Source: Tubulanus polymorphus (Eukaryota > Animalia > Nemertea). From it: a stretch of DNA of 64,000 nt. The notes below the pieces were generated by a model, which saw nothing but the letters and a program-made list of their open reading frames with translations, was not told the DNA's origin and made no database searches. Positions 4,665 to 61,596 of this stretch are shown one piece after another. Each line of letters begins with the position of its first letter. Within the stretch, counting starts at the first letter, position 1. The stretch spans positions 20,854,210-20,918,209 of the forward strand of contig NC_134030.1 in assembly GCF_964204645.1 (NCBI RefSeq), read 5' to 3'. The translations under genes and the position numbers were made by a program.

Positions 4665-7600
4665 TCAAACCCGTTTATTTCTGGCCCGAATTGATTTGAT
4701 ATCAATAGTGAGGATGGTGTAAAGAAGTGGATTCAGTGACGAGTTGATCGGTAGGAAAAGTACCGCCAACCAAGCCGCCACTTGGTTCGGTATTTCTACT
4801 CGGAATACAGCGCAAAACTGAACGATAATTATCGGTAACCAGCAAAATAAATTACACAGATTTATCACTAAACTCCTACGTGCCAGAACCAATTCGGTAG
4901 GATCAGCTCTACCCGAGCCGGACCTGCTTCCAGATACGAGTCTATACATCTGTGCATACGTCATCATTATTGTAACAAGTACGACCGAGTTAAACGCGGC
5001 ATAAATTGAGAATGAATATTGCCAGGCGTGGACATTGATGGATAGTAAATTCATAGGTAAACAAACACCAGTTGTGCCGTAAAAATTATTTCCGAAATAA
5101 TAAGATGGCGAAAGTGGTAGCATTGAAATGATGCTTAAAGTGATCCAACATATACAACAAATACTGGACACAGAAATCGTAGATGTAATTGGGTTTCGAG
5201 AAAATGGATCGACGATATTTGAGTATCTCTGACGGGTTAGAATGAGGAGAAAAATCAAGGATCCTTCGCACGAAAGCGTCACTATAATCCCAGCGAGTCG
5301 ACACAATGAACTACCCGTCCAACTTTCAGAATATAGAAAATAAACTCCTTTATAGACGTAATCGGCTCCTGCGATCAGAAACAGATAAATCGACATCAGA
5401 AAATCGCAAGTGGCAATATTAATGATGAGGATATCAGAGGATGTGTTACGTGATTCAGAGGATGAAATGCGTAACGCTTGAACGCGAAGTAAAATTACGA
5501 TGATGTTCGCAAAAAAGCTGAATGAAGCGATCGCCCAAATGATTGCTCTAAGAACAGTGTTACCCATCAGGTCGGAACAAGATGAAAATTGGTCGGCTTC
5601 CGGGAGACACTGGTCAACACTCGAAACCATGCAACAAAATTTGTACGCGTCAGAAGCCAAAGAACTCAATAATGTAACACTGTCAAAAACGTTTCTTTGT
5701 ACGGATATGACTTTTGAATTTTTGGTTAGATCCATAATTCTTAGCTTTGTTAATCCGGCAAATGCGTGTGTTGAAATATGTCTGATTTTGTTATTGCTGA
5801 TATTTAGAGACTCTAAAGCGGATAAACCACTGAACACATTTCCACTGAGTAACGACAAGGAAAGTCCGTGAAGATCGAGATCGCTTAGTGAATTTAAACC
5901 TTGAAAACTGCCTTCTTCCAAATTTGTTAAAGGATTTCCAAAAATGATGAGAATTTCCAAACTAGACAAACCGGTGAATGTATTCGCGGACAATGATATT
6001 AAGCGGTTATATGTAAGATCTAATGTATGTAGATTATGCAGGTTTGAGAACGAGTTTGGAACAATATAAGATAAATTGTTACGTGAAATATTGAGGAGAT
6101 GTAGATAGAGGTAAGAAGAAAACGTGGACTCATTGAATACAAGTCGATTATCTGATAATATCAGAACACGAGTTGATGCCGAGAAAAGATCATTAATTTC
6201 TACTAAACCAGCATCATCGCAATAAATGAAATGACCTTGACATTTACAATATTTTGGACACGAAACGTCACAGTAGGACTCGTCATCAGTGGTATGTTTA
6301 CAATTTACAACACCATCGCAAACTTCAGATTGAGGTATACATCGGTTTTCCTGGCCACATTTGAACATGCCGGGACATGATAAAGTCTCGCAGTTTCGCT
6401 CGTCTTCTGAATTAGGACAATCTGATCGACCATCGCACACCTGTCCCATCGGTATACAGTAAGATGCTGGACATTTCACAGTACCAGCAGGACATATGAA
6501 ATCAGTACAACCTTGTATATGTTCGAGCCTTCTACATACCGGGTAACCAATCGACATCCTTTCTAAAATACATCTATGACGTCTAGAATAACAATGAGGA
6601 GAATCGAAAGAACATCTTTGTTCATCAGATTCTGTACAAAGATTTGTAAAGTTAGTCGTACAGTAGTTATCATTATTACAGTGAACAGTAGGATTCACTG
6701 TAACATTCGATGTTAAAAGTTCATCTTCTTCGAGGCTTCCGCTACAATCTACAACACCATCTCGATACAATAGAGAACTGATACATTCACCGTTGTTACA
6801 CAGAAACCCGTTGCAAAGTTGCGGAGCACATCCCCACTCATCGGAGCCGTCCTTACAGCTAACGATTCCATCACATCGGTACGATCTATCCACACATTGT
6901 CCACTAGTACAACGGTATTTTTGGTGCAAACACAGTGGATGAAAACACAAGTTTTCATCCGAGCCATCGACACAATCCGGTTCAAAGTCGCAGATACCAC
7001 TTATAGATGTAACCCGTCCATCCGAACAGTGGAACTGACTTAGTAAGTTTAAACCCGAACAATCGAGTTCATCTTCACCGTGTTGACAGTCGTTTCTGGT
7101 ATCACATACGCGATGGTCACTGATACATCTTTGATCGTTACATTTAAATTGCCACGATTTACAACCGCTTATAGAAGCCAACTCTTCATCAGTTACATTA
7201 TAGGAACATAGCACGGAATGAACGTTGTTCGTCTGATTATTCCACGGTTTTATCGACCATTTTAATGACTCGATAAAAGTGATTTCATCCCTTGTCAAAA
7301 CTGGTTCGATCACTTTAAACATTTTCCTAGCATCCATAGTCAGTATAGCGCCATATTGATGTTTAAAACAAAAAGCGTCCATTAATGCTTTTATTTCATT
7401 TTCCACATGGAAAGTTACAATACCTATTTCAGCGTGAAGGTCACGACACATTTTCGTAGCGCTTCGAATATCCAAACTTCGATTGTTGTTCCAATCTGTG
7501 AGAATTTGACAACATTTGCCGTCCACATTTTGCCAGCCTCTTTTACAGGTCGAGTTGTTGGATGTATTGGGATTTCGAGCACTTTCATATCCAGTTAGAA

Positions 7601-7952
7601 ATGCGATATCGTTATGAGTATCAGTTATTTCTATGATACTCGTTGTATTTTGATTTCTTATTGTCGAATTATCCATGCGCTCTGAATCGACGTGAATTCT
7701 ATCCGATTCGCAAATAAAAGTTGTTCGAGTCTCCTCGATTTGACACGGGAATCGAACCCAGTTCGCTGATCCTCGTGGATTATTCAGTATCATCGCCGTA
7801 CACGGCATATTGACGTCATTTATCGGCTGTTTTCGTAGAGGAGATATCAACCCTTGAATAACTTCTGGTATGGTTTCGTTTATCATAGCAGGTTTAAACC
7901 ACTCTGCGTAGCTCAATGGTTTCCCATCAGTCCATGAGTGATACCCATCATT
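4665..7952 (-). CDS. Copy 1 exon 3: CTL C-half, CTL-like domain, LDLa repeats, LRRs, 7TM
   Basis: ORF 4665..8015 trimmed to the CAG acceptor; CxxxxFxC...CDGxxDCxDGSDE modules, LxxLxLxxN repeats, NPLLY. Confidence 0.93.
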   Translation of the reverse strand, partial: NDGYHSWTDGKPLSYAEWFKPAMINETIPEVIQGLISPLRKQPINDVNMPCTAMILNNPRGSANWVRFPCQIEETRTTFICESDRIHVDSERMDNSTIRNQNTTSIIEITDTHNDIAFLTGYESARNPNTSNNSTCKRGWQNVDGKCCQILTDWNNNRSLDIRSATKMCRDLHAEIGIVTFHVENEIKALMDAFCFKHQYGAILTMDARKMFKVIEPVLTRDEITFIESLKWSIKPWNNQTNNVHSVLCSYNVTDEELASISGCKSWQFKCNDQRCISDHRVCDTRNDCQHGEDELDCSGLNLLSQFHCSDGRVTSISGICDFEPDCVDGSDENLCFHPLCLHQKYRCTSGQCVDRSYRCDGIVSCKDGSDEWGCAPQLCNGFLCNNGECISSLLYRDGVVDCSGSLEEDELLTSNVTVNPTVHCNNDNYCTTNFTNLCTESDEQRCSFDSPHCYSRRHRCILERMSIGYPVCRRLEHIQGCTDFICPAGTVKCPASYCIPMGQVCDGRSDCPNSEDERNCETLSCPGMFKCGQENRCIPQSEVCDGVVNCKHTTDDESYCDVSCPKYCKCQGHFIYCDDAGLVEINDLFSASTRVLILSDNRLVFNESTFSSYLYLHLLNISRNNLSYIVPNSFSNLHNLHTLDLTYNRLISLSANTFTGLSSLEILIIFGNPLTNLEEGSFQGLNSLSDLDLHGLSLSLLSGNVFSGLSALESLNISNNKIRHISTHAFAGLTKLRIMDLTKNSKVISVQRNVFDSVTLLSSLASDAYKFCCMVSSVDQCLPEADQFSSCSDLMGNTVLRAIIWAIASFSFFANIIVILLRVQALRISSSESRNTSSDILIINIATCDFLMSIYLFLIAGADYVYKGVYFLYSESWTGSSLCRLAGIIVTLSCEGSLIFLLILTRQRYSNIVDPFSRNPITSTISVSSICCICWITLSIISMLPLSPSYYFGNNFYGTTGVCLPMNLLSINVHAWQYSFSIYAAFNSVVLVTIMMTYAQMYRLVSGSRSGSGRADPTELVLARRSLVINLCNLFCWLPIIIVQFCAVFRVEIPNQVAAWLAVLFLPINSSLNPLLYTILTIDIKSIRARNKRV

Positions 7953-10900
7953 CTGTTTAAAATATAAATCATTTTCATTCATCGACAGTAAAAATGGTTT
8001 TACCATTATTTTCATTATTAATTAATTGAAGTTAATCCGTTCATAATTGATTTATTGAGGTTAATCAGTTCAATTTATGACATTTGACTTGTAAGTGTGT
8101 TAAGTGTCTGAATGCCAATTTGATCTTTTTCAATATTTGGCATGAAAAAAAAGAATTCGAGAATTTTCAATTTTCTCACCACTATAAAAATTATCATAAG
8201 TCCTGTATAGAAGTTATATATACATAATATTTTGATGCCATAAAAATGACACATCAATTTGGAGTCTCTTATTTCAAATTCGATGTTGATTTTCTTTTTC
8301 ATTTGTCGAGAGTGGAAGTTACCTTGTATTTTAGCCCGATCATCATTATAAGCGCCTCCTGGGTATATCCCTTTCTAAGCAGTTTCGTGGCGAATAATCT
8401 TTTGACAGAAATCATTTCATCTTGTGAGTTGATACTGAGAAGATGTCCTCCGTATTTCTGTTGACAATACATTTCAGCGTTCTCCCAATTCAGACGTTCA
8501 TCTCTGATGTATTTGACGCAGGAAATTCCCGAATCTATAAATCCTGATTTACAGCCGATTTTATCAAACTGTTTTATTGGTAACGACTTTTCTAAATTGT
8601 ATTGTATTTGAAATGTGGGAACGCGATCCTTTATCTCAAATTGCAAATCATTGTCACTTAAACTATAAAATATATTTCCACGTTTAGCATAAGTTCCACA
8701 TATTGTAATTTGATGTTGGGCTTCGCTTTTTGGAATAGCAAATCCATTATCGTAAAGGTCACGTATCTGTTGCTTGAAAAGAATTGGGTCTTTGTCCAAT
8801 GAAGATAATTTACTGCACGGTAAAGTCTGAATAAATTTGATTATAAATCTGTAATATTGAATTCGATTATTCATTATCGGGTTTTCAAAGATATAATAAG
8901 AAGACTTCGAAGTATATCCCGCCGATCCCGGATAGTTCGGTGATTGTACGATTCCACATTCATCCCTATCCGGGAAAAATGAAACACCAAATTGAGATTG
9001 TGTAGGTTTTTTCTCTCCTTGACATTTACGACGTAGTTTAACTATCAATTCATCATTCCAGAATTGATATTTGTAGAACAATTTCAAAGTGTTTAATACG
9101 AAACTGTTATTGAGAAACTGATTTGATAAACTCATTTCCATGTCACATGATCTACTAGAGTATCGCGCTGGAAAACATGCATCAATTTGATATTCATATT
9201 CTGATAAAATACAAATATTTTCTAAAGGAAGGCGCCGGTTTTCAGGTGTAATCACCAGACAGTGTGACGTCATATTAATCTGATTTTCTCCTTCCCGTAA
9301 AACATACCCGTAACAATCAGTAGGATTGAATCTGAGATACCCAGATTTAGGTACATCATTAAAAGCGTATCCTACTACAGTAACCGTTCCTCCTGATGTA
9401 ATCAGACTGACGACCCTACGACCGTACCACTGACCAGGACAATACGGACCATAGCGTCTAGCTGTAAAACTACCACCATCATATATATAAAATCCAGCTC
9501 TCTCGCACGTCTCTGATAAAACTGTTAGTTTTAATCTATCCTCATAGATATCAACTTTCCGCTTGAATTCTAATGTATTTATACGATACGATAATTTTGT
9601 CTTCTTTGACGCCGGGAGGAGTTTGCTTGGAATCAAACTTGCGCTGGAGCCAGATATCTACAAAATATGAATAACTTACGAATAAAAGAACGATTTACAT
9701 TATTCTGCGTTTACGAAACGGATTATATTTGAAAGATACATTAATGCTTTCGTCTTCGACCACGGGCCAGTACACAAGCTGGCTGTTAAACAGCTACAAA
9801 ATAGTGAAAATAAGACTTTTTCCCTTCTTCTTAAACTAAACAAAAAGCGTTAATGTTTCTTTTTTTCGCATAAGAAATTAGATATCAATTTAGACGATGA
9901 GGTTTCTTTTTAATTGTTTTTTGAGATTTATTGCAACATCTTCATTTGATGCTAAATGAAAATTGATATCTCCTATTTCAATTAAGTTTCATCTTTTTAG
10001 TGTTATCTCGATTACGTTTTGGCTCATATGGCTCATATGATATTTTACATTTAATTTAATCATGTTTACTCACCCTGGGTTTGTGGACTTGTACGTCTTC
10101 TATAGAAATAGATTTCACTTCAAATTCTATCCTTACATTCGATTGTAAAACACCTGGTCTTATTAAAACGCACAGTATGACGAGAAAGCCTTCAGATTTA
10201 ACACTCAGTGATTCCAGGTAGTTGTAACCGAGTAAAATATCAGTTCCTACAACGCGTAACCCTTCTAGTTTATATACACCGATGACGTCACCGGATGTGC
10301 TGAGATCACGTGTCCAGTTGAAGACGACGTACTGTAACACCTGCACTGTGATAGACCAGCAGTGTAAGTGTTTTGATCGAGTTATTACGTGTAAACTGTT
10401 GTCATCGGGAATGAGCACTCCAGACTCGTTATTAGAGATTTGAATTAACGGATTAGAGACGTTCCAATCAGATATTCTATATACCTTAACTGATAGTTGT
10501 GATTTAAAGGATGATGGATGTGTATCATCAATAATGGCTTTGTCAGTTTTAGTATAGAATGATGATGGTGGATGTCCGGTTTGTTCTGGTATAACAGCAA
10601 TAGGTTCACTGATGTTCCATCCGTCGTAAATTTGAACAGTTGTCACTGAATGAGCGCCAGGAGGTAATCTGAAATCTATTTGTGTAAATGTCAAATTCAT
10701 CGCACAACCATTCGGGATCCCGATCCATTCCAAGTACAATTTACATTGACTTAAGATGATTGCGAATTTGTATCCTGCCGAAGTTTGTAATTTGTTTAAC
10801 ATTAAATTGTATTCTCTGCAGTTGTGAATGAATTTCAAATGGCTTCGTTCAAAACGATATATGACATAAACCCAACTACCCCGCGCACCATCGACGTTAC

Positions 10901-11264
10901 TTCTAAACATCAACGAGATCGAATCGTTACGGCGGATTTCATGTTTTCCTTCTCCGCAGAATCTGTTATCGGACTCACCGACGAGAAGGTAGTTATCACT
11001 ACAGAACATCGACGGCTCGATGTCGTAGTATAGTTTGATGTTGAAAGTTCCCGGTAAAGAGCTGTTGACGAACCAACGACATTCAACACCGCGCGTTAAC
11101 GACGGGTAATTCGGTGAAACGATGTAACCGGACGTAGAATCGAGTGGGTACCAAGTGTTGTTACAAGACGAACTGACCGTCACAGAGTCAGACAGATCAG
11201 CGTGTGCGATGTTAACTCGCCAGACGATCAGCGACGCTATAAACAGCGCTCTCAGTCGATCCAT
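4665..11264 (-). CDS. GRL101-like LGR GPCR copy 1 (CUB-CTL-LDLa-LRR-7TM), join complement(4665..7952,8323..9657,10074..11264), ~1937 aa
   Basis: Signal peptide MDRLRALFIASLIVWRVNIAHA. Donors AGG|GTGAGT and AAG|GTAACT; acceptors ttttgtag|ATA and ttaaacag|AAT; all phase 0. Splicing rebuilds the CTL motif MIGLKYK|NDGYHSWTDG. LDLa repeats, LRRs, hinge YKFCC...SSCSDLM, and TM motifs CWLP and NPLLY. An alternative in-frame ATG exists at 11276 in this copy only. Confidence 0.9.
8323..9657 (-). CDS. Copy 1 exon 2: CUB-like modules and CTL N-half
   Basis: CGIVQSPNYPG, IYDGG...GPYC, WENAEMYCQQKYGGHLLSINS; flanked by AG/GT. Confidence 0.88.
10074..11264 (-). CDS. Copy 1 exon 1: signal peptide and CUB domains
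   Basis: SGYIVSPNYP...CRW...FCG CUB signature; GTGAGT donor. Confidence 0.88.
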
Positions 11265-14823: not shown

Positions 14824-17800
14824 TCAGCGAGTTTTTAAAATCCGTTTATTTTTAGCCCGAATTGATTTAACATCGATAGTGAGGATGGTGTAAAGAAGTG
14901 GATTCAGTGACGAGTTGATCGGTAGGAAAAGTACCGCCAACCAAGCCGCCACTTGGTTCGGTATTTCTACTCGCAATACAGCGCAAAACTGAACGATGAT
15001 TATCGGTAACCAGCAAAATAAATTACACAGATTTATCACTAAACTCCTACGTGCCAGAATCAATTCGGTAGGATCAGCTCTACCCGAGCCGGACCTGCTT
15101 CCAGATACGAGTCTATACATCTGTGCATACGTCATCACTATTGTAGCAAGTACGACCGAGTTAAACACGGCAAATATAGCGAATGAATATTGCCAGGCGT
15201 GGACATTGATGGTCAGTAAATTCATAGGTAAACAAACACCGGTTGTGCCGTAAAAGTTATTACCGAAATAAGAAGATGACGATAGTGGTAGCATTGAAAT
15301 GATGCTTAAAATGATCCAACATATGCAACAAATACTGGACACAGAAATCGAAGATATAATTGGGCTTCCAGAAAATGGATCGACGATATTCGAGTATCTT
15401 TGACGGGTAAGCATGAGCAGAAAGGTCAGCGATCCCTCGCAAGATAGAGTCACTATAATCCCAGCGAGTCGACACGATGAACTATCCGTCCAACTTTCAG
15501 AATTTAAGAAGTAAACTCCTTTATAGACGTAATCGGCTCCAGCGATCATAAACAGATAAATCGACATCAGAAAATCGCAAGTGGCAATATTAATAATGAG
15601 GATATCAGAGGATGTATTACGTGATTCAGAGGATGAAATTCGAAACGCTTGAACGCGAAGTAAAATGACAATAATGTTTGCGAAAAAGCTGAATGAAGCG
15701 ATCGCCCAAATGATTGCTCTAAGAACAGTGTTACCCATCAGGTCGGAACAAGATGAAAATTGGTCGGCTTCAGGGAGACACTGGTCAACATTCGGAATCA
15801 TGCAACAAAATTTGTACGCGTCAGAAGCCAAGGTACTTATTAATGTAAGACTGTCAAAAACGTTTTTTTCTACGGATATGACTTTTGAATTTTTGGTTAG
15901 ATCCAGACTTTTAAGTTTTGTTAATCCGGCAAATGCGTTTGGTGAAATATAACTGATTCTGTTATTGCTGACATCTAACGACTCTAAAGCGGATAAACCA
16001 CTGAACACATTTCCAACGAGTAACGACAAGGAAAGTCCGTGAAGATCGAGATCGCTTAATGACTTTAAACCTAGAAAACTGCCTTCTTCTAAATATCTCA
16101 CTGGATTCCCAAAAATCAAGAGAATATTCAAACTGTTCAAACCGGCGAATGTATTCGCGGACAATGACATTAAGCGGTTATATGTAAGATCTAATGTATG
16201 TAGATTATGCAGGTTTGAGAACGAGTTTGGAACAATATAAGACAAATTGTTACGTGAAATATTAAGAAGGTGTAGATAGAGGTAAGAAGAAAACGTGGAC
16301 TCATTGAATACAACTCGGTTTTCTGATAAAATCAGAACTCGAGTTGATGCCGAGAACATATCTGTAATTTCTACCAAACCAGCATCATCGCAATCAATTA
16401 AATGACCTCGACATTTACAATTTTCAAGACACGTGACGTCACAGTAAGACTCGTCATCAGTGTTATGTTTACAATTTACAACATCATCACAAACTTCTGA
16501 TTGAGGTATACATCGGTTTTCCTGGCCACATTTGAACATGCCGGGACACGACAAAGTCTCGCAGTTTCGCTCGTCTTCTGAATTAGGACAATCGGATCGA
16601 CCATCGCACACCTGTCCCATCGGTATACAGTAAGATGCTGGACATTTTACAGTACCAGCTGGACATTTGAAATCAGTACAACCTTGTATATGTTCGAGCC
16701 TTCTACATACCGGGTAACCAATCGGCGTCCTTTCTAAAATACATCTATGACGTCTAGAATAACAATGAGGAGAATCGAAAGAACATCTTTGTTCATCAGA
16801 TTCTGTACAGAGATTTGTGAAATTAGTCGTGCAGTAGTTATCATTATTACAGTGAACTGTAGGATTCACTGTAACATTCGATGTTAAAAGTTCATCTTCT
16901 TCGAGGCTTCCGCTACAATCTACAACACCATCCCGATACAATACAGAACTGATACATTCACCGTTGTTACACAGAAACCCGTTGCATATTTGTGGACCGC
17001 ACTCCCGTTCGTCGGAACCGTCCTTGCAGCTAACGATTCCATCACATCGGTACGATCTATCTACACATTGACCACTAGTACAGCGGAATTGTTGGGGCAA
17101 ACACAGTGGATGAAAACACGATTTCTCATCCGAGCCATCGACACAATCCGCTTCAAAGTCACACAAACCACTTATTGATATAACCTGACCATCTGAACAG
17201 TGGAACTGACTTTGTAAGTTTAAACCAGAACAATCGAGTTCATCTTCACCGTGTTGACAGTCGTTTCTGGTATCACATACGCGATGGTCGCTGATACATC
17301 TTTGATCGTTACATTTAAACTGCCACGATTTACAACCGCTTATAGAATCCCACTCTTCACCAGTCTTATTATAGTAACATAGCACGGAATGAACGTCGTT
17401 TGTCTGATTATTCCATGGTTTTATCGACCATCTCAACGACTCGATAAAAGTGATTCCATTCCTTGTCAAAACTGGTTCGATCACTTGAAACATTTTCCTA
17501 GCATCCATAGTCAGTATAGCGCCATATTGATGTTTAAAACTAAACTCGTCAATTAATGCTTTTATTTCATTTTCCCTGCGCCTAGTAACAATAGCTATTT
17601 CAGCGTGAAGATCACGACACAATTTCGTAGCGCTTAGAATATCCAAACCTCGATTGTTGATCCAATCTGTGAACATTTTACAACATTTACCTTCGACATT
17701 TTGCCAACCTTTTTCACAGGTCGAGTTGTTGGTTGTATTTGGATTTTTAATACTTTCATTTCCAGTGAGAAATACGATATTGTTAAGAGTATCAGTTAGT

Positions 17801-18111
17801 TCTGTGATGCTCGTTGTATTTGTTGAATTATCCACGCGTTCTGAATCGATGTCAATTCTATCCGATTCACAAATAAAAGTTGTTCGAGTCTCCTCGATTT
17901 GACACGGGAATCGAACCCAGTTCGCTGATCCTCGTGGATTATTCAGTATCATCGCCGTACACGGCATATTGACGTCATTTATCGGTTGTTTTCGTAGAGG
18001 AGATATCAATCCTTGAATAACTTCTGGTATCGTTTCGTTTATCATTGCAGGTTTAAACCACTCTGTGTAGCTCAATGGTTTTCCATCAGTCCACGTGTAG
18101 AAACCATCATT
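14824..18111 (-). CDS. Copy 2 exon 3 (CTL-LDLa-LRR-7TM)
   Basis: ORF 14824..18138 trimmed to ttgaacag|AAT. Confidence 0.93.
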   Translation of the reverse strand, partial: NDGFYTWTDGKPLSYTEWFKPAMINETIPEVIQGLISPLRKQPINDVNMPCTAMILNNPRGSANWVRFPCQIEETRTTFICESDRIDIDSERVDNSTNTTSITELTDTLNNIVFLTGNESIKNPNTTNNSTCEKGWQNVEGKCCKMFTDWINNRGLDILSATKLCRDLHAEIAIVTRRRENEIKALIDEFSFKHQYGAILTMDARKMFQVIEPVLTRNGITFIESLRWSIKPWNNQTNDVHSVLCYYNKTGEEWDSISGCKSWQFKCNDQRCISDHRVCDTRNDCQHGEDELDCSGLNLQSQFHCSDGQVISISGLCDFEADCVDGSDEKSCFHPLCLPQQFRCTSGQCVDRSYRCDGIVSCKDGSDERECGPQICNGFLCNNGECISSVLYRDGVVDCSGSLEEDELLTSNVTVNPTVHCNNDNYCTTNFTNLCTESDEQRCSFDSPHCYSRRHRCILERTPIGYPVCRRLEHIQGCTDFKCPAGTVKCPASYCIPMGQVCDGRSDCPNSEDERNCETLSCPGMFKCGQENRCIPQSEVCDDVVNCKHNTDDESYCDVTCLENCKCRGHLIDCDDAGLVEITDMFSASTRVLILSENRVVFNESTFSSYLYLHLLNISRNNLSYIVPNSFSNLHNLHTLDLTYNRLMSLSANTFAGLNSLNILLIFGNPVRYLEEGSFLGLKSLSDLDLHGLSLSLLVGNVFSGLSALESLDVSNNRISYISPNAFAGLTKLKSLDLTKNSKVISVEKNVFDSLTLISTLASDAYKFCCMIPNVDQCLPEADQFSSCSDLMGNTVLRAIIWAIASFSFFANIIVILLRVQAFRISSSESRNTSSDILIINIATCDFLMSIYLFMIAGADYVYKGVYFLNSESWTDSSSCRLAGIIVTLSCEGSLTFLLMLTRQRYSNIVDPFSGSPIISSISVSSICCICWIILSIISMLPLSSSSYFGNNFYGTTGVCLPMNLLTINVHAWQYSFAIFAVFNSVVLATIVMTYAQMYRLVSGSRSGSGRADPTELILARRSLVINLCNLFCWLPIIIVQFCAVLRVEIPNQVAAWLAVLFLPINSSLNPLLYTILTIDVKSIRAKNKRILKTR

Positions 18112-21100: not shown

Positions 21101-21427
21101 TTCATGTTTTCCTTCACCGCAGAATCTGTTATCGGCCGCACCGACGAGAAGGTAATTATCACTACAGAATATCGACGGCTCGATGTCGTAGTATAGTTTG
21201 ATGTTGAAAGTTCCCGGTAAAGAGCTGTTGACGAACCAACGACATTCAACACCGCGCGTAAACGACGGGTTATTCGGTGAAACGATGTAACCGGACGTAG
21301 AATCGACGGGGTACCAAGTGTTGTTACAAGACGAACTGATCGTCACAGAGTCAGACAGATCAGCGTGTGCGATGTTAACTCGCCAGACGATCAGCGACGC
21401 TATAAACAGCGCTCTCAGTCGATCCAT
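14824..21427 (-). CDS. GRL101-like LGR GPCR copy 2, join complement(14824..18111,18403..19782,20234..21427), ~1953 aa
   Basis: Same domain order and same phase-0 GT-AG sites as copy 1; uninterrupted frames; 15-aa insertion in exon 2. Confidence 0.9.
18403..19782 (-). CDS. Copy 2 exon 2 (CUB-like and CTL N-half)
   Basis: ttttgtag|GTA ... AAG|gtaact. Confidence 0.88.
20234..21427 (-). CDS. Copy 2 exon 1 (signal peptide and CUB)
   Basis: ATG of MDRL; AGG|gtgagt. Confidence 0.88.
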
Positions 21428-21709: not shown

Positions 21710-22142
<433 letters not shown>

Positions 22143-32290: not shown

Positions 32291-32768
<478 letters not shown>

Positions 32769-42770: not shown

Positions 42771-43004
<234 letters not shown>

Positions 43005-48164: not shown

Positions 48165-51100
48165 CTGCAAAAACGGGTTTTAAGCATTTTTCTACTTTAA
48201 TTATTGACATTGTGTTTAGACTCGAATATTTTCAGTGCATATTTGACATCTTTTTTCGAAATTCAGCTTAAAGAATGAATATGCTTACAAAAATTGTCAA
48301 TTTTCGACCATCATTATATTTATTGTACTTTTTATGAATGAAGTTTTATTTATAATTTATATCTAGAATAAAGAATATTTGCCTTCATCAAATTTTACGA
48401 TTTACATGAATTGGGAGTCTAGTGATTCGAGGATAATCTAACTTTCTTATCTCATTTTGTCGATTGGAAATTACCTTGAATCTAAGCCCGAGCATCATTA
48501 TAAGCGCCTCCTGGGTATATCCCTTTCTAAGCAGTTTCGTGGCGAATAATCTTTTGACAGAAATCATTTCATCTTGTGAGTTGATACTGAGAAGATGTCC
48601 TCCGTATTTCTGTTGACAATACATTTCAGCGTTCTCCCAATTCAGACGTTCATCTCTGATGTATTTGACGCAGGAAATTCCCGAATCTAGAAATCCTGAT
48701 TTACAGCTGATTTTATCAAACTGTTTTATTGGTAACGCCTTTTCTAAATTGTATTGTATTTGAAATGTGGGAACGCGACCATTTATCTCAATATACAAAT
48801 CATTGTCCCATAAACTATAAAATACATTTCCACGTTTAGCAATAGTTCCACATATATCAGTTTGATGTTCGGTTCCGCTTCCTGAAATAGCTAATCCATT
48901 ATCGTAAAAGTCAAGTATTTGTTGTTTGAATAGAATTAGGTCTTTGTCAAATCTTGATAATTTATTGCACGTTAAAGACTGTATAAACTTGATTATAAAT
49001 CTGTAATATTGAATTCGATTATTTTCTATCGGGTTTTCAAAGCGATAATAAGAAGATTTCGAAAAATATCCCGCCGATCCCGGATAGTTCGGTGATTGTA
49101 CGATTCCACATTCATCCCTATCCGGGAAATATGAATGCCCGAATTGGGATTGTGTAGGTTTTTTTACTCCTTGACATTTACGACGTAGTTTAACTATTAA
49201 TTCATCATTCCAGAATTGATATTTGTGGAACAATTTCAAAGCGTTAAATACGAAACTGATATTGAGAAACTGATTTGATAAACTCATTTGCCTGTCACAC
49301 TTTCTTCTCGTGTATCTCGCAGGAAAACACGCATCAATTTGATATTCATATTCTGATAATATATAAATGTTTTCTAAAGGAAGGCGCCGGTTTTCAGGTG
49401 TAATCACGAGACAGTGTGACGTCATGTTGATCTGATTTTCTCCTTCCCGTAAAACATACCCGTAACAATCAGCAGGACTGAATCTGAGATACCCAGAGTT
49501 AGGCACATCACTATAAGCGTATCCTACTACAGTAACCAGTCCTCCTGATGTAATCAGACTAACGACGTTACGACCATATTTATAACCAGGACAATACGGA
49601 CCATAGCGTCTAGCTGTAAAATTACCACCATCATATATATAAAATCCAGCTCTCTCGCACGTCTCTGATAAAACTGTTAGTTTTAATCCATCCTCATAGA
49701 TATCAACTTTCCGTTTAAATTCTAATGTATTTATACGATACGATAATATTTTCTTCTTTGACGCCGGGAAGAATTCGCTTGGAATCAAACTTGCACTGGA
49801 GCCAAATATCTACAAAATATGAATATTGATCATTAATCGAATAATTTACATTGTTTTGTTAGATAAATTGTTTTACATTTTTCCTTAAATCATACACTTT
49901 ATGTATTTATCCGACAAAATAATTGACGAATTTTCCTTGTTCTTAATTACACTTTTGAATACATTAAAGGGATGTTCCGTATCTTATATTTTCGCACAAG
50001 AAATTTAAAGGTTGTACAAAAAAGTTATATTTTAAAGAATTATTTAAACATCAGTACTTGCACCAATATTCATGTTTAACAAAAATTCATATTTCTCATT
50101 TTAACAATATCAATTTAATTTTGTAAAACAATAGCTGAGAAATAATTTTACTACATCTGTGGACTTGCACGCCTTCTATTGAAAGAGAAATCTTTAAACT
50201 CATTTTTATTTCTATGGTTCATTCTTACGTATTATTTAGCTGAGGCTGAGTAGTTATTTTACTCACCCTTCGTTTGTGAACTTGTACGTCTCCTGTGGAT
50301 AAAGATTTCACTTCAAATTCTATCCTTACATTCGATTGTGAAACACCTGGTCTTATTAAAACGCACAGTATGACGAGAAAGCCGTCAGATTTAACACTCA
50401 GTGATTCCAGGTAGTTGTAACCGAGTAAAATATCAGTTCCTACAACGCGTAACCCTTCTAGTTTATATACACCGATGACGTCACCGGATGTGCTGAGATC
50501 ACGTGTCCAGTTGAAGACGACGTACTGTAACACCTGCACTGTGATAGACCAGCAGTGTAAGTGTTTTGATCGAGTTATTACGTGTAAACTGTTGTCATCG
50601 GGAATGAGCACTCCAGACTCGTTATTAGAGATTTGAATTAACGGATTAGAGACGTTCCAATCAGATATTCTATACACCTGAACTGATAGTTGTGATTTAA
50701 AGGACAGTAGATGTGTATCGATAATGGCTTTGTAAGTTTTTGTGTAAAATGATGATGGTGGATGTCCGGTTTGTTCTGGTATAACAGCTATAGGTTCACT
50801 GGTGATGTTCCATCCGTCGTAAATTTGAACAGTTGTCGTTGAATGAGCGCCAGGAGATAATCTGAAATCTATTTGTGTAAACGTCAAATTCATAGCGAAA
50901 CCATCCGGGATCTCGATCCATTCCAAATATAATATACATCGTTTTAAATATATTGCGAATTTGTATCCTGTCGAAGTTGGTAATATGTTTATTCTTTGTT
51001 TGTATATTATGCAGTTATGAATAAACTTCAAATTGTTTCGTTCATAACGATATATGATATAAACCCGACTACCCCGCGCACCATCGACGTTACTTCTAAA

Positions 51101-51457
51101 CATCAACGAGATCGAATCGTTACGGCGGATTTCATGTTTTCCTTCACCGCAGAATCTGTTATCGGACTCACCGACGAGAAGGTAGTTATCACTACAGAAT
51201 ATCGACGGCTCGATGTCGTAGTATAGTTTGATGTTGAAAGTTCCCGGTAAAGAGCTGTTGACGAACCAACGACATTCAACACCGCGCGTAAACGACGGGT
51301 AATTCAGTGAAACGATGTAACCGGACGTAGAATCGACGGGGTACCAAGTGTTGTTACAAGGCGAACTGACCGTCACAGAGTCAGACAGATCAGCGTGTGC
51401 GATGTTAACTCGCCAGACGATCAGCGACGATATAAACAGCGCTCTCAGTCGATCCAT
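44865..51457 (-). CDS. GRL101-like LGR GPCR copy 5, join complement(44865..48164,48475..49809,50267..51457), ~1941 aa
   Basis: Same architecture; intron 2 donor AAG|GTAATT, acceptor ttttgcag|CCA. Confidence 0.9.
48475..49809 (-). CDS. Copy 5 exon 2 (CUB-like and CTL N-half)
   Basis: Conserved phase-0 splice sites. Confidence 0.88.
50267..51457 (-). CDS. Copy 5 exon 1 (signal peptide and CUB)
   Basis: ATG of MDRL; gtgagt donor. Confidence 0.88.
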
Positions 51458-52871: not shown

Positions 52872-53091
<220 letters not shown>

Positions 53092-54949: not shown

Positions 54950-57900
54950 TCAGCGAGTTTTTAAAATCCGTTTATTTTTAGCCCGAATTGATTTAACATC
55001 GATAGTGAGGATGGTGTAAAGAAGTGGATTCAGTGACGAGTTGATCGGTAGGAAAAGTACCGCCAACCAAGCCGCCACTTGGTTCGGCATTTCTACTCGG
55101 AATACAGCGCAAAACTGAACGATAATTATCGGTAACCAGCAACATAAATTACACAGATTTATCACTAAACTCCTACGTGCAAGAATCAATTCGGTAGGAT
55201 CAGCTCTACCCGAGCCGGACCTGCTTCCAGATACGAGTCTATACATCTGTGCATACGTCATCACTATTGTAGCAAGTACGACCGAGTTAAACACGGCAAA
55301 AATAGCGAATGAGTATTGCCAGGCGTGGACATTGATGGTCAGTAAATTCATAGGTAAACAAACACCGGTTGTGCCGTAAAAGTTATTACCGAAATAAGAA
55401 GATGACGATAGCGGTAGCATTGAAATGATGCTTAAAATGATCCAACATATGCAACAAATACTGGACACAGAAATCGAAGATATAATTGGGCTTCCAGAAA
55501 ATGGGTCCACGATATTCGAGTATCTTTGACGGGTAAGCATTAGCAGAAAGGTCAACGATCCCTCGCAAGAAAGAGTCACTATAATCCCAGCGAGTCGACA
55601 CGATGAACTATCCGTCCAACTTTCAGAATTTAAGAAGTAAACTCCTTTATAGACGTAATCGGCTCCTGCGATCAAAAACAGATAAATCGACATCAGAAAA
55701 TCGCAAGTGGCAATATTAATAATGAGGATATCAGAGGATATGTTACGTGATTCAGAGGATGAAATGCGTAACGCTTGAACGCGAAGTAAAATGACAATAA
55801 TGTTCGCGAAAAAGCTGAATGAAGCGATCGCCCAAATGATTGCTCTAAGAACAGTGTTACCCATCAGGTCGGAACAAGATGAAAATTGGTCGGCTTTCGG
55901 GAGACACTGGTCAACATTCGGAACCATGCAACAAAATTTGTACGCGTCAGAAGCCAAAGTTCTTAATAATGTAAGACTGTAAAAAACGTTTTTTTCTACG
56001 GATATGACTTTTGAATTTTTGGTTAAATCCAGACTTTTAAGTTTTGTTAATCCGGCAAATGCGTTTGGTGAAATATAACTGATTCTGTTATTGCTGATAT
56101 TTAACGACTCTAAAGCGGATAAACCACTGAACACATTTCCACCGAGTATTGACAAGGAAAGTCCGTGGAGATCGAGATCGCTTAATGACTTTAAACCTTG
56201 AAAACTGCCTTCTTCTAAATATCTAACTGGATTCCCAAAAATAAAGAGAATTTCCAAACTGTTCAAACCGGCGAATGTATTCGCGGACAATGATACTAAG
56301 CGGTTATATGTAAGATCTAATGTATGTAGATTATGCAGGTTTGAGAACGAGTTTGGAACAATATAAGACAAATTGTTACGTGAAATATTAAGAAGGTGTA
56401 GATAGAGGTAAGAAGAAAACGTGGACTCATTGAATACAACTCGGTTTTCTGATAAAATCAGAACTCGAGTTGATGCCGAGAAAAGATCAGTCATTTCTAC
56501 TAAACCAGCATCAACGCAATCAATTAAATGACCTCGACATTTACAATATTTTGGACACGTGACGTCACAGTAGGACTCGTCATCAGTGGTGTGTTTACAA
56601 TTTACAACACCATCGCAAACCTCAGATTGAGGTATACATCGGTTTTCCTGGCCACATTTGAACATGCCGGGACACGTCAAAGTCTCGCAGTTTCGCTCAT
56701 CTTCTGAATTAGGACAATCTGATCGACCATCGCACACCCGTCCCATCGGTATACAGTAAGATGCTGGACATTTTACAGTACCAGCTGGACATATGAAATA
56801 GGAGCAACCTTGTATATGTTCGAGCCTTCTACATACCGGGTAACCAATCGGCATCCTTTCTAAAATGCATCTATGACGTCTAGAATAACAATGAGGAGAA
56901 TCGAAAGAACATCTTTGTTCATCAGATTCTGTGCAGAAATTTGTAAAGTTAGTCGTACAGTAGTTATCATTATTACAGTGAACTGTAGGATTCACCGTAA
57001 CATTCGATGTTAAAAGTTCATCTTCTTCGAGGCTTCCGCTACAATCTACAACACCATCCCGATACAATAGAGAACTAATACATTCACCGCTGTTACATAG
57101 AAACCCGTTGCAAAGTTGCGGAGCACATCCCCACTCATCGGAGCCGTCCTTACAGCTAACGATTCCATCACATCGGTACGATCTATCCACACATTGTCCA
57201 CTAGTACAACGGTATTGTTGGTGCGAACATAGTGGATGAAAACACGAGTTTTCATCCGAGCCATCGACACAATCCAGTTCAAAGTCACACAAACCACTTA
57301 TTGATATAACCTTACCATCTAAACAGTGGAACTGACTCTGTAATTTTGAACCCGAACAATCGAGTTCATCTTCACCGCGTTGACAATCGTTTCTCGTATC
57401 ACATACGCGATGGTCGCTGATACATCTTTGATCGTCACATTCAAATTGCCACGATTTACAACCGCTTACAGAAGCAAAATCTTCACCAGTTACATTATAG
57501 GAACATAGCACGGAATGAACGTTGTTTGTCTGATTATTCCACGGTTTTATTGACCATCTCAACGACTCGATAAAAGTGATTTCATCCCGTGTCAAAACTG
57601 GTTCGATCACTCGAAACATTTTCTTAGCATCCATTGTCAGTACAGCACCATATTGGTGTTTAAAACTGAACTCGTCAATTAATGCTTTTATTTCATTTTC
57701 CCTGTGCCTAGTTACAATACCTATTTCAGCGTGAAGGTCACGACACAATTTCGTAGCGCTAAGAATATCTAAATCTCGATTGTTGTTCCAATCTGTGAAC
57801 AATTGACAACATTTGCCTTCGACATTTTGCCAACCTTTTTCACAGGTCGAGTTGTTGGTTGTATTGGGATTTCGAATACTTTCATTACCAGTGAGAAATA

Positions 57901-58249
57901 CGATATTGTTAAGAGTATCGGTTAGTTCTGTGATGCTCGTTGTATTTGTCGAATTATCCGCGCGTTCTGAATCGATGTCAATTCTATCCGATTCACAAAT
58001 AAAAGTTGTTCGAGTCTCCTCGATTTGACACGGGAATCGAACCCAGTTCGCTGATCCTCGTGGATTATTCAGTATCATCGCCGTACACGGCATATTGACG
58101 TCATTTATCGGTTGTTTTCGTAGAGGAGATATCAATCCTTGAATAACTTCTGGTATCGTTTCGTTTAAGATAGCAGGTTTAAACCACTCTGTGTAGCTCA
58201 ATGGTTTCCCATCAGTCCACGTGTAGAGACCATCATTGTCATTCATTGG
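54950..58249 (-). CDS. Copy 6 exon 3 (CTL-LDLa-LRR-7TM)
   Basis: ORF 54950..58255 trimmed to the acceptor. Confidence 0.93.
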   Translation of the reverse strand, partial: PMNDNDGLYTWTDGKPLSYTEWFKPAILNETIPEVIQGLISPLRKQPINDVNMPCTAMILNNPRGSANWVRFPCQIEETRTTFICESDRIDIDSERADNSTNTTSITELTDTLNNIVFLTGNESIRNPNTTNNSTCEKGWQNVEGKCCQLFTDWNNNRDLDILSATKLCRDLHAEIGIVTRHRENEIKALIDEFSFKHQYGAVLTMDAKKMFRVIEPVLTRDEITFIESLRWSIKPWNNQTNNVHSVLCSYNVTGEDFASVSGCKSWQFECDDQRCISDHRVCDTRNDCQRGEDELDCSGSKLQSQFHCLDGKVISISGLCDFELDCVDGSDENSCFHPLCSHQQYRCTSGQCVDRSYRCDGIVSCKDGSDEWGCAPQLCNGFLCNSGECISSLLYRDGVVDCSGSLEEDELLTSNVTVNPTVHCNNDNYCTTNFTNFCTESDEQRCSFDSPHCYSRRHRCILERMPIGYPVCRRLEHIQGCSYFICPAGTVKCPASYCIPMGRVCDGRSDCPNSEDERNCETLTCPGMFKCGQENRCIPQSEVCDGVVNCKHTTDDESYCDVTCPKYCKCRGHLIDCVDAGLVEMTDLFSASTRVLILSENRVVFNESTFSSYLYLHLLNISRNNLSYIVPNSFSNLHNLHTLDLTYNRLVSLSANTFAGLNSLEILFIFGNPVRYLEEGSFQGLKSLSDLDLHGLSLSILGGNVFSGLSALESLNISNNRISYISPNAFAGLTKLKSLDLTKNSKVISVEKNVFYSLTLLRTLASDAYKFCCMVPNVDQCLPKADQFSSCSDLMGNTVLRAIIWAIASFSFFANIIVILLRVQALRISSSESRNISSDILIINIATCDFLMSIYLFLIAGADYVYKGVYFLNSESWTDSSSCRLAGIIVTLSCEGSLTFLLMLTRQRYSNIVDPFSGSPIISSISVSSICCICWIILSIISMLPLSSSSYFGNNFYGTTGVCLPMNLLTINVHAWQYSFAIFAVFNSVVLATIVMTYAQMYRLVSGSRSGSGRADPTELILARRSLVINLCNLCCWLPIIIVQFCAVFRVEMPNQVAAWLAVLFLPINSSLNPLLYTILTIDVKSIRAKNKRILKTR

Positions 58250-61200
58250 CTGCAAAAACGGTTTTTAAGCATTTTCTACTTTAACCATTGTTTAGACTCG
58301 AATATTTTCAGTGCATATTTCACATCTTTTTCAAAATTCTAAACACTATACTTTTTATGAATTAAGTTTTATCTTTAATTGACATCTAGAATAAAGAATA
58401 TTAACCCTTTTAGTGCTGACTAATTAATACCCTATGGTGCTGGAGAAAATTTGCAAATTTTTAAAAATTCCACCTAAGTGCTTTGCATAACGAGAATACC
58501 ACTATAGTGCGTCTACACCGCAGCGCGGTATATCGTTAGTTACTAGTATTTCACTATGTTTAACAGGTGCTGCCATTTTTCAAGAGATAATTACTAATTA
58601 CGTTAATACACTGCACTGCGGTGTAGACGTTATTTTGTCGAGTGAAGGTTACCTTGTATTTTAGCCCGATCATCATTATAAGCGCCTCCTGGGTATATCC
58701 CTTTCTTAGCAGTTTCGTGGCGAATAATCTTTTGACAGAAATCATTTCATCTTGTGAGTTGATACTGAGAAGATGTCCTCCGTATTTCTGTTGACAGTAC
58801 ATTTCAGCGTTCTCCCAATTCAGACGTTCATCTCTGATGTATTTGACGCAGGAAATTCCCGAATCTAGAAATCCTGATTTACAGCCGATTTCATCAAACT
58901 GTTTTATTGGTAACGACTTTTCTAAATTGTATTGTATTTCAAATGTGGGAATGCGTTCCTTTATCTCAAAATACAAATCATTGTCCCATAAACTATAAAA
59001 TACACTTCCACGTTTAGCCATAGTTCCACATATTTTAGTTAAATGTTCAGTGTCGCTTCCTGAAATAACTACTCCATTATCGTAAAGGTCATGTATCTGT
59101 TGCTTGAATAGAATTGGGTCTTTGTCTGATCTAGATAATTTACTGCACGGTAAAGTCTGAATAAATTTGATTATAAATCTGTAATATTGAATTCGATCAT
59201 TTTCAATCGGATTTTCGAAGTTATAATAAGATGATTTCGAAGTATATCCCGCAAAGCCCGGATAGTTCGGTGATTGTACGATTCCACATTCATCCCTATC
59301 CGGCAAATATGAAGAACCGGGAAATTGTGTAGGGTTTTTTACTCCTTGACATTTACGACGTAGTTTAACTATTAATTCATCATTCCAGAATTGATATTTG
59401 TAGAACAATTTCAAAGTGTTTAATACAAAACTGTTATTGAGAAACTGATTTGATAAACTCATTTGCCTGTCACACTTTCTTCTCGAGTATCGCGCTGGAA
59501 AACATGCGTCAATTTGATACTCATGTTCTGATAATATATAAATGTTTTCTAAAGGAAGGCGCCGGTTTTCAGGTGTAATCACCAGACAGTGTGACGTCAT
59601 GTTGATCTGATTTTCTCCTTCCCGTAAAACATACCCGTAACAATCAGCAGGACTGAATCTAAGATACCCAGAGTTAGGTACATCACTATAAGCGTACCCT
59701 ACTACAGTAACCGGTCCTCCTGATGTAATCAGACTGACGACGTTACGACCGTACCACAGACCATCAGGACAATACGGACCATAGCTTCTAGCTGTAAAAT
59801 TACCACCATCATATATATAAAATCCAGCTCTCTCGCACGTCTCTGATAAAACGGTTAGTTTTAATCCATCCTCATAGATATCAACTTTCCGCTTGAATTC
59901 TAATGTATTTATACGATACGATAATATTGTCTTCTTTGACGCCGGGAATAGTTTGCTCGGAATCAAACTTGCACCGGAGCCAAATATCTACAAAATATGA
60001 ATATTGATCATTAATCGAATAATTTACATTGTTTTGTTAGATACATTGTTTTACATTATTCTTAAATCATACACTTTATGTATTTATCCGACAAAATAAT
60101 TGACGAATTTTCCTTGTTCTTAACTACACTTTTAAATGCATTAAAGGGATGTTCCGTATCTTATACTTTCGCACAAGAAATTTAAAGGTTTTACAAAAAA
60201 GTTATTTTTTCAAAGCTTTATTTAAACATCAGTACTTTCACTAGAATTCATGTCTAATGAAAATTAATATTTCTCAATTAAACAATTCTACATAATTTTG
60301 TAAAGCAATAGCTGAGAAATGATTTTACTACATCTGTGGAGCTGCACGTCTTCTATTGAAAGAAAAATTCAAATTTAGCTGAACCTGAGTAGTTATTTTA
60401 CTCACCCTTAGTTTGTGAACTTGTACGTCTCCTGTGGATAAAGATTTCACTTCAAATTCTATCCTTACATTCGATTGTAAAACACCTGGTCTTATTAAAA
60501 CGCACAGTATGACGAGAAAGCCGTCAGATTTAACACTCAGTGATTCCAGGTAGTTGTAACCGAGTAAAATATCAGTTCCTACAACGCGTAACCCTTCTAG
60601 TTTATATACACCAATGACGTCACCGGATGTGGTGAGGTCACGTGTCCAGTTGAAGACGACGTACTGTAACACCTGCACTGTGATAGACCAGCAGTGTAAG
60701 TGTTTTGATCGAGTTGTTACGTGTAAACTGTTGTCATCAGGAATGAGCACTCCAGACTCGTTATTAGAGATTTGAATTGACGGATTAGAGACGTTCCAAT
60801 CAGATATTCTATACACCTGAACTGATAGTTGTGATTTAAAGGACAATTGATGTGTATCAATAATGGCTTTGTTAGTTTTAGTATAAAATGATGAAGGGGG
60901 ATGTCCGGTTTGTTCTGGTATAACAGCTATAGGTTCACTGGTGTTCCATCCGTCGTAAATTTGAACAGTTATCACTGAATCAGCACCAGGAGATGATCTG
61001 AAATCGATCTGTGTAAAAGTCAAATTCATCGCAAAACCGTCCGGGATCCCGATCCATTCCAAACATAATTGACAATGTTTTAAAAATATTGCGAATTTGT
61101 ATCCTGACAATGTTTGTAAGTTGTTAAATATGAAATTGTATTTTCCGCAGTTGTGAATGAATTTCAAATCGTTTCGTTCAAAACGATATATGATATAAAC

Positions 61201-61596
61201 CCGACTACCCCGCGCACCATCGACGTTACTTCTAAGCATCAACGAGATCGAATTTTTACGGCGGATTTCATGTTTTCCTTCACCGCAGAATCTGTTATCG
61301 GACTCACCGACGGAAAGGTAGTTATCACTACAGAATATCGACGGCTCGATGTCGTAGTAAAGTTTGATGTTGAAAGTTCCTGACGGTAAAGAGCTGTTGA
61401 CGAACCAACGACATTCAACACCGCGCGTTAACGACGGGAATTTCGGTGAAACGATGTAACCGGACGTAGAATCGAGTGGGTACCAAGTGTTGTTACAAGA
61501 GGAACTGACCGTCACAGAGTCAGACAGATCAGCGTGTGCGATGTTAACTCGCCAGACGATCAGCGACGCTATAAACAGCGCTCTCAGTCGATCCAT
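54950..61596 (-). CDS. GRL101-like LGR GPCR copy 6, join complement(54950..58249,58653..59987,60406..61596), ~1941 aa
   Basis: Same architecture; intron 2 donor AAG|GTAACC retained despite a nearby insertion. Confidence 0.9.
58405..58631 (+). mobile_element. Truncated piggyBac-like MITE in intron 2 of copy 6
   Basis: Starts TTAA|CCCTTT; absent from the other five copies; internal inverted repeat cgtctacaccgcag.gc / gcactgcggtgtagacg. Confidence 0.65.
58653..59987 (-). CDS. Copy 6 exon 2 (CUB-like and CTL N-half)
   Basis: Conserved phase-0 splice sites. Confidence 0.88.
60406..61596 (-). CDS. Copy 6 exon 1 (signal peptide and CUB)
   Basis: ATG of MDRL; gtgagt donor. Confidence 0.88.

Follow-up and report, generated by a model that had tools for sequence, protein, structure and literature searches.

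Results

Six tandem units of three open reading frames

A 64-kb stretch of the genome of the palaeonemertean Tubulanus polymorphus (contig NC_134030.1, positions 20,854,210 to 20,918,209; hereafter the window, meaning the whole 64,000-nucleotide stretch) holds a tandem array of genes predicted to encode large G-protein-coupled receptors (GPCRs) whose ectodomains combine CUB, C-type lectin-like, LDLa and leucine-rich repeat (LRR) modules. The minus strand of the window contains 18 open reading frames (ORFs) of 200 aa or more, forming six groups of three that are spaced approximately 10 kb apart (Table 1). Every one of the 18 exons is stop-free and a multiple of three in length, measuring 397-398 aa for exon 1, 444-460 aa for exon 2 and 1,095-1,099 aa for exon 3, which gives 1,937-1,953 aa per gene (397 + 445 + 1,095 = 1,937 aa in unit 1). 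With introns of 291-457 nt the genes are compact, each fitting its three exons into 6.6 kb, and the spacers between them measure 2.8-4.1 kb. The six copies form part of a seven-copy minus-strand array, and a plus-strand array is found about 70 kb away.

The splice sites are highly regular. In every unit exon 1 ends at the donor AGG/GTGAGT (the slash marks the exon boundary), exon 2 is entered through the acceptor TTTTGTAG and left through the donor AAG/GTAA, and exon 3 is entered through AACAG in units 1-3 and through TTTTGCAG, 12 nt further upstream, in units 4-6. The initial annotation had proposed canonical phase-0 splice sites in all six copies; each junction is indeed phase 0 and GT/AG (6/6 units), and the unit 1 junctions it had placed at 10074/9657 and 8323/7952 are exact. 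A methionine followed by the hydrophobic leader MDRLRALFIASLIVWRVNIAHA opens exon 1, and exons 2 and 3 have no leader, so that our reading of the sequence, together with the stop-free exons, upholds the further claims that a signal peptide is confined to exon 1 and that all six copies are intact. Outside the window, the exon order 1-2-3 is kept at 11 of 11 extra loci on contigs C6, C8, C9, C11, C12 and C22. In these 11 paralogues, intron 2 is GT/AG at all matched sites, with the donor pattern of one of them (L011) unmatched.

Judged by profile matches, the junction between exons 2 and 3 splits one C-type lectin-like domain (CTLD). All searches and folds were made exon by exon, the lectin halves included. 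The exon 2 profile matched only residues 2-59 of CTLDs of ~130 aa, the start of exon 3 matched CTLD residues 82-102, and the joined reading ...MIGLKYK/NDGYHSWTDG... restores the canonical WIGL...WxDG segment. The CTLD fold signature (cysteine framework, WIGL, WxDG...C...W..C...FxC) is thus found across two halves that were searched separately. Since the same domain is unbroken in the homologue P0171 (described below), the earlier suggestion that exons 2 and 3 rebuild a single lectin domain is well founded.

We conclude that the three ORFs of each unit very probably constitute one three-exon gene. The case rests on five indirect lines (selection, conserved structure, the split lectin domain, a homologue in a second species and the one-chain homologue P0171); splicing into a single receptor of ~1,940 aa, as first annotated, accordingly is supported on comparative grounds. 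Paralogues L001-L005, on C6 and C9, show apparent ORFs of 1,460-1,608 aa, which we considered as precise intron losses and rejected: intron 2 is present as a GT...AG-bounded segment of 66-75 nt that is open in frame. If retained, this short intron would add ~22-25 aa inside lectin domain 1.

Domain anatomy of the predicted receptor

Searched against Pfam by exon, the unit 1 protein matches CUB in exon 1, the start of Lectin_C in exon 2, and six LDLa modules, LRR_8 and 7tm_1 in exon 3. The CUB-CTL-LDLa-LRR-seven-transmembrane (7TM) outline given previously is therefore right, with the corrections that only one CUB domain is detectable by sequence and that ~130 aa are without any domain match.

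The secure CUB domain, CUB1, reaches 21.8 bits with Pfam CUB (cut-off 21.4), and a profile of its paralogues retrieves cubilin from the PDB (3.4e-9). It is followed by a putative second CUB-like domain, which AlphaFold2 (AF2) models with a predicted local distance difference test score (pLDDT) of 65-87, and for which the top Foldseek matches are all tandem-CUB proteins (C1r/C1s, neuropilin a1a2, PCPE-1 and Neto2); its column identity among paralogues is 0.39-0.66. The remainder of exon 1 (aa 264-397) had no match in Pfam or in the PDB profile search, and AF2 confidence there was low. For exon 2 aa 1-365, ESM-Atlas features are nearest to CUB clusters (0.91). Alignment of the exon 1 and exon 2 profiles with hhalign paired the SPNYP motif alone (probability 1.7%), and AF2 of exon 2 with 15 paralogues gave no confident fold (pLDDT 32). 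One CUB per protein is thus secure by sequence, the other parts of the ~850-aa N-terminal region being CUB-like by fold or features, or without a domain match.

At the end of exon 2, the first 28-35 profile positions of Pfam Lectin_C are matched (positions 2-28 in unit 1), and the PDB residues 2-59 mentioned above are those of a snaclec; the exon 3 half (aa 1-83) matches a mannose-receptor CTLD (E 0.055). Lectin domain 1 has neither an EPN/QPD tripeptide nor WND, reading ...RKQPINDVNMPC...SANWVRFPC; sugar binding is therefore not predicted, and we claim for it a lectin-like fold only. A second, degenerate lectin-like domain is suggested by weak PDB profile matches of exon 3 aa 135-255 to residues 3-62 of an MRC2 CTLD (E 0.02) and to Fc-epsilon-RII (E 0.08). 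Further along exon 3, Ldl_recept_a matches at 2.5e-33 in 1 + 5 stretches, six in total, and LRR_8 at 1.3e-26. In the 7TM domain of unit 1, QRY replaces the D/ERY motif at the end of TM3 (...LTRQRYSNIV), while CWLP, NPLLY and R3.50 are kept. At position 3.49, 16 of 16 paralogues carry Q, H or Y instead of an acidic D/E (Q/H/Y-R-Y/F); in contrast, the outgroup P0002 (~33% identical) has DRV.

A type C LGR core

By sequence comparison, the receptor core is that of a type C (relaxin/GRL101-type) leucine-rich repeat-containing GPCR (LGR) with much added sequence at its N terminus. Among solved structures, the nearest is human RXFP1 (7tmw), matched at E 9.5e-79 in a single alignment running over LRRs, hinge and 7TM (residues 242-689). 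Weaker matches were FSHR (2e-33), LHCGR (1e-31), TSHR (6e-27) and, via its LRRs only, LGR4 (7e-48), which places the core nearer to type C than to types A and B. Type C2 LGRs are defined architecturally by multiple LDLa modules (PMC4079206, PMC11863921), and the ~6 LDLa modules found here fit that definition of the C2, or GRL101-type, class. Database relatives carry the automatic name GRL101-like. These results, with the LRRs and a rhodopsin-type 7TM, agree with the GRL101-like core recognized in the initial annotation.

A 7TM phylogeny, suggested there as a check, gave a partial answer. The tree came from a quick search over LDLa-containing LGRs, LGR5 and the nemertean family, with no authentic GRL101, RXFP or Lgr3/4 sequence for reference. 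The nemertean family groups into a single clade (100% support) on a long stem (1.44), its members separated by very short branches; this clade falls among LDLa-containing LGRs and apart from LGR5, within a polytomy that leaves types C1 and C2 unseparated.

A family of about 300 members

The family extends far beyond the window. Across the 268-Mb T. polymorphus assembly, which all copy-number searches covered, the 7TM region gave 523 first-look candidates; all 127 that were scored were at least 79% identical, and in ~86% of these 127 the exon 3 frame stays open for 1,000 aa or more. Exon 1 is co-amplified (377 candidates, 104 of them scored at 70% identity or more), and a 32-nt motif from lectin domain 1 has 303 genome matches with up to 2 mismatches, versus 0 for a control. 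Based on these three counts, the family comprises about 300 members, mostly intact, on at least 10 contigs. An earlier estimate of at least 6 amplified copies was correct as to tandem, intact copies and understated their number approximately 50-fold. One T. polymorphus protein at NCBI, LOC141911221 (P0001), is 92% identical to copies on contig C9. Two runs of the family on C6, at 19.82-19.87 Mb and 20.05-20.10 Mb, lie ~232 kb apart and have identical match scores, which points to either a very recent large segmental duplication or a duplicated assembly segment.

Homologues in other sources

Two or more other sources show the layout CUB...lectin-LDLa-LRR-7TM, with 27-33% identity. One is a homologue with ~33% identity in ENA assembly ERZ25069853. 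Its N-terminal ORF (959 aa) has a leader and a CUB and runs to ...YIGLHDTLE/GTGAGT; 2 kb downstream on that strand, a second ORF is entered at ...TTCCAG/HGRYQWTDG... and encodes LDLa, LRR and 7TM. This homologue has exons 1 and 2 fused, and its intron falls in the same lectin segment, within ~3 codons of the position in the window; at least 7 N-terminal ORFs of this assembly share contigs with receptor ORFs. The Metaclust protein P0171, 1,663 aa long and truncated within TM1, combines leader, CUB, unbroken CTLD, LDLa, LRR and hinge in one chain and is colinear with exon 3 of the window (27% identity, E 2e-67). With this genome's own records excluded, an exon 1 profile run against 1.84 billion representative proteins returned generic multi-CUB proteins only, and a 1,545-aa natural ORF used as query returned LRR proteins only. 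The family had been described as lineage-specific; this is not supported, because the layout recurs in these other sources and because lectin-LDLa-LRR clusters have been published in Biomphalaria (PMC12297450). On a contig of ERZ25069853 (L012), Srw-type 7TM GPCR genes adjoin the receptor homologue at 6810-7823 and 14073-14844.

Constrained and variable blocks

All three exons are under purifying selection, with ratios of nonsynonymous to synonymous substitution (dN/dS) of 0.2-0.5. For exons 1, 2 and 3 the values are 0.52, 0.53 and 0.28 among the six copies of the window and 0.39, 0.39 and 0.23 among 16 paralogues. Among the same 16, the well-conserved columns are those of CUB1, exon 1 aa 300-360, lectin domain 1, the LDLa block and the 7TM, with identity up to 1.00 near TM7; the LRRs are intermediate, and column identity is low in exon 1 aa 141-260, exon 2 aa 1-40 and 160-340, and exon 3 aa 81-240. 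Exon 2 codons 331-390 were a candidate for positive selection on the basis of six-copy ratios of 3.5-8.4, which rest on very few substitutions; we rejected it, as no window exceeds 1 among the 16 paralogues.

Synonymous divergence (pS) varies along the gene from 0.11 to 0.67 among the 16 paralogues. A 42-nt stretch encoding NNPRGSANWVRFPC (within 7704-7952 and the equivalent positions of other copies) is near-identical, even synonymously, in 17 copies that are otherwise only ~70% identical in protein, and the closest pair of units shifts by exon, from U4-U5 in exon 1 to U4-U6 in exon 2 and U2-U3 in exon 3. Taken together, the range of pS, the synonymous identity and these shifts in relatedness fit gene conversion acting on conserved blocks that lie between variable ones.

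Whole units, spacers included, are 89-93% identical. At the nucleotide level, the exons of unit 1 match those of units 2-6 at 90-94% identity and its upstream spacer does so at ~93%; its introns (9658-10073 and 7953-8322) cannot be aligned with theirs. Intron 1 of unit 1 is unique in the genome save for a 60-nt piece in common with a mirror array at C6:20.74-20.77 Mb. This pattern looks like exon-restricted homogenization or intron replacement.

Repeats and spacers

A 109-bp minisatellite (2.1-5.8 copies, 90-97% matches) stands upstream of all six start codons and belongs to the duplicated unit; it may be a promoter element or a substrate for recombination. In four spacers (TA)n tracts of 56-173 units lie farther upstream than the minisatellite, and in subfamilies L005 and L006 a minisatellite-related repeat is found directly downstream of the stop instead. 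Transposon-driven amplification was rejected, as the spacers of the six-unit window hold no ORF of 132 aa or more. We likewise rejected a recurrent 104-aa ORF downstream of the stop as a fourth exon, since it is found in only 3 of the 6 units.

Table 1. Coordinates of the six units, the upstream minisatellite and the domains of the unit 1 protein (window positions; domain rows refer to unit 1)
Feature	Position (strand)	Part of gene	Remarks or basis
Unit 1 gene	4665..11264 (-)	exon 1 11264-10074, exon 2 9657-8323, exon 3 7952-4668, stop 4665-4667	1,937 aa
Unit 2 gene	14824..21427 (-)	exon 1 21427-20234, exon 2 19782-18403, exon 3 18111-14827	1,953 aa
Unit 3 gene	24269..30827 (-)	exon 1 30827-29640, exon 2 29182-27848, exon 3 27556-24272	
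Unit 4 gene	34883..41458 (-)	exon 1 41458-40268, exon 2 39828-38497, exon 3 38182-34886	acceptor 12 nt upstream of unit 1-3 position
Unit 5 gene	44865..51457 (-)	exon 1 51457-50267, exon 2 49809-48475, exon 3 48164-44868	
Unit 6 gene	54950..61596 (-)	exon 1 61596-60406, exon 2 59987-58653, exon 3 58249-54953	
109-bp minisatellite	11603-12240, 21767-22004, 31149-31722, 41811-42196, 51803-52297, 61960-62238	320-365 bp upstream of each start codon	
Predicted signal peptide	11199..11264 (-)	exon 1 aa 1-22	sequence reading; helix 2-24 in AF2 model
CUB1	10845..11165 (-)	exon 1 aa ~34-140	Pfam CUB and cubilin match; near-invariant among paralogues
Putative second CUB-like beta-sandwich	10476..10841 (-)	exon 1 aa ~142-263	AF2 and Foldseek; most variable block of exon 1
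Highly conserved ~130-aa module without domain match	10074..10475 (-)	exon 1 aa 264-397	column identity up to 0.95
Candidate CUB-like modules	8563..9657 (-)	exon 2 aa 1-365	motifs C.RAGFYIYDGG..YGPYC and CGIVQSPNYPGS; most divergent part of the protein
Lectin-like domain 1, first half	8323..8562 (-)	exon 2 aa 366-445, ends ...MIGLKYK	Pfam Lectin_C and snaclec match
Lectin-like domain 1, second half	7704..7952 (-)	exon 3 aa 1-83, NDGYHSWTDG...FICES	mannose-receptor CTLD match
Hypervariable linker rich in N-glycosylation sites	7551..7703 (-)	exon 3 aa 84-134	alignment; column identity 0.28-0.37
Putative second, degenerate lectin-like domain	7188..7550 (-)	exon 3 aa 135-255	weak profile matches in PDB
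LDLa / Cys-rich block	6270..7163 (-)	exon 3 aa 264-561, ~6 LDLa	Pfam Ldl_recept_a; cysteine pattern
LRRNT, ~7 LRRs and Cys-rich hinge	5568..6260 (-)	exon 3 aa 565-795	Pfam LRR_8, LRR_5, LRRNT; RXFP1 alignment
Rhodopsin-class 7TM	4698..5558 (-)	exon 3 aa 799-1085	Pfam 7tm_1 8.3e-21; hydropathy; motif alignment

Discussion

The anatomy, copy number, pattern of selection and cross-species conservation of layout that we observed directly are likely to reflect a three-exon gene for a CUB- and lectin-extended type C LGR, present as a duplicated and converted family of ~300 members that would serve as a diversified sensor repertoire; splicing, ligand diversity, G-protein coupling and role are the predicted parts of this model. 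Tandem and segmental duplication of whole ~10-kb units would have built the family, and gene conversion would then have reshuffled it. The variable outer modules (the second CUB-like domain, the exon 2 modules, the linker with lectin domain 2 and, in part, the LRRs) may bind differing extracellular ligands, and the constant LDLa-hinge-7TM portion would couple binding to a single shared G-protein pathway, on the model of activation through the tethered LDLa module of RXFP1, whose activation is LDLa-dependent (PMC4837482). The outcome would be a repertoire of sensors for chemical cues or non-self.

Several of our results weigh against this model. A search of sequencing runs found no RNA run containing the stretch. 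Among the contigs that four runs gave when mapped to it, none shows a spliced joint, and X4 (from 2015), the one run that may be a transcriptome of the species, contributes no contig; two of the other runs, X2 and X3, resemble low-coverage DNA, with a 151-nt contig at depth 3.5 running unspliced across the exon 1 donor. Diversifying selection is not demonstrated, there being no 20-codon window with dN/dS above 1 among the 16 paralogues. The assignment of exon 2 as CUB-like is weak, and lectin domain 1, invariant and lacking sugar-binding motifs by its sequence, is not a variable binder. Finally, because the acidic residue of D/ERY is lost in 16 of 16 paralogues, normal G-protein signalling cannot be assumed.

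The recognition-receptor function put forward in the initial annotation is no more than plausible. As to what might be recognized, a chemosensory role is a tentative possibility, an immune or non-self role a more doubtful one, and some other role would be the least doubtful of the three, though short of an even chance. The chemosensory lead comes from GRL101-like receptors expressed, and enriched, in the sensory tentacles of starfish and triton snails (PMC6267866, PMC13403566), and the immune lead from 12 CTL-LDL-LRR GRL101-like genes in a schistosome-resistance region of Biomphalaria sudanica (PMC12297450). The more specific proposition that the ~300 paralogues constitute a GPCR-based system of non-self recognition, innate immune or allorecognition, with hypervariable ectodomain blocks kept diverse by gene conversion on top of an unchanging LDLa-7TM signalling module, strikes us as unlikely. 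Were it true, the family would represent a new class of invertebrate recognition receptors signalling directly via G proteins, and expression of one or a few receptors per cell would be possible.

The number and similarity of the copies could alternatively mean that the family is a young, largely functionless amplification drifting towards pseudogenes, or in part an assembly artefact. Copy number is very high, units are 89-93% identical with their spacers included, some array segments ~232 kb apart score identically, and the possible transcriptome X4 holds nothing of the locus. We nevertheless regard this explanation as improbable, given that dN/dS is well below 1 in each exon, that ~86% of the scored copies keep exon 3 open for at least 1,000 aa, that exons are still 90% or more identical where introns have diverged past alignment, that the layout is kept at ~30% identity in other sources, and that read-derived contigs of two samples carry many variants.

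It seems equally improbable that these proteins are conventional hormone receptors, with relaxin/insulin-like peptide or lipoprotein ligands, in place of varied sensors. RXFP1 is the closest solved relative, and type C2 LGRs have been proposed to bind insulin-like peptides (PMC6267866); yet ~300 paralogues with variable ectodomains fit a hormone axis poorly, known LGR complements number a handful per genome (PMC11863921), and hormone-binding LGRs have nothing equivalent to the ~1,100 aa of CUB and lectin modules. Least credible of all is that the three ORFs are separate co-duplicated genes for a secreted CUB protein, a CUB/half-lectin protein and a GRL101-like receptor: no spliced joint was found, and gene callers on the ENA assembly give the N-terminal and receptor ORFs as distinct products, but exon 2 starts with neither a methionine nor a leader, exon 2 ends and exon 3 begins in the middle of a lectin fold, splice sites and phase are kept in all copies examined, exons 1 and 2 are one ORF in ERZ25069853, and P0171 has all modules in one chain.

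Read as diversified type C LGRs, the nemertean proteins can be compared with several known systems. Like GRL101 of Lymnaea stagnalis and other type C2 LGRs, they have multiple LDLa modules followed by LRRs, hinge and a rhodopsin-class 7TM, and both are orphan receptors; GRL101 carries about 12 LDLa modules, and the nemertean receptor ~6. Unlike GRL101, they add ~1,100 N-terminal residues (CUB, CUB-like and two lectin-like domains), number ~300 copies and have lost the D/ERY acid. They have the LDLa-LRR-7TM order of RXFP1/RXFP2 (type C1), the best solved match over LRR-hinge-7TM. RXFP1/RXFP2 differ in that only one LDLa is present, the ligand is a peptide hormone, the E/DRY motif is intact and a genome contains one or two such genes. 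The chemoreceptors of vertebrates (V2R/OR) and the TLR/SRCR expansions of sea urchins likewise comprise hundreds of tandem paralogues with a constant signalling part, a variable binding part and conversion mosaicism; these are unrelated protein families, and for the nemertean genes a sensory or immune role is only proposed. The SudRes2 genes of B. sudanica (PMC12297450) also place a CTLD ahead of LDLa, LRR and GPCR domains in a dense tandem cluster, are poorly annotated by standard pipelines and have a proposed recognition-receptor role; they differ in numbering 12 genes in 440 kb, with no CUB and one LDL repeat described.

The combination of a lectin domain with a GRL101-type receptor, and its occurrence in small clusters, are thus already published. 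As far as our literature searches show, the CUB-rich extension, the scale of ~300 genes, the loss of the D/ERY acid across the family and the homogenization in blocks are new. The exon-restricted homogenization beside hypervariable blocks offers a natural case for the study of gene conversion in receptor diversification, and the compact genes are suited to expression and screening. A genome usually has few LGRs, which act as hormone or Wnt-pathway receptors. A set of some 300 intact genes would far exceed any LGR expansion we found described (the largest being 18, in Biomphalaria), with each gene specifying a modular ectodomain of ~1,600 aa in which the outer modules vary around a constant signalling core. 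The orphan GRL101 class would thereby gain a testable role as a diversified sensor, and nemerteans a first candidate repertoire of chemoreceptors or immune receptors.

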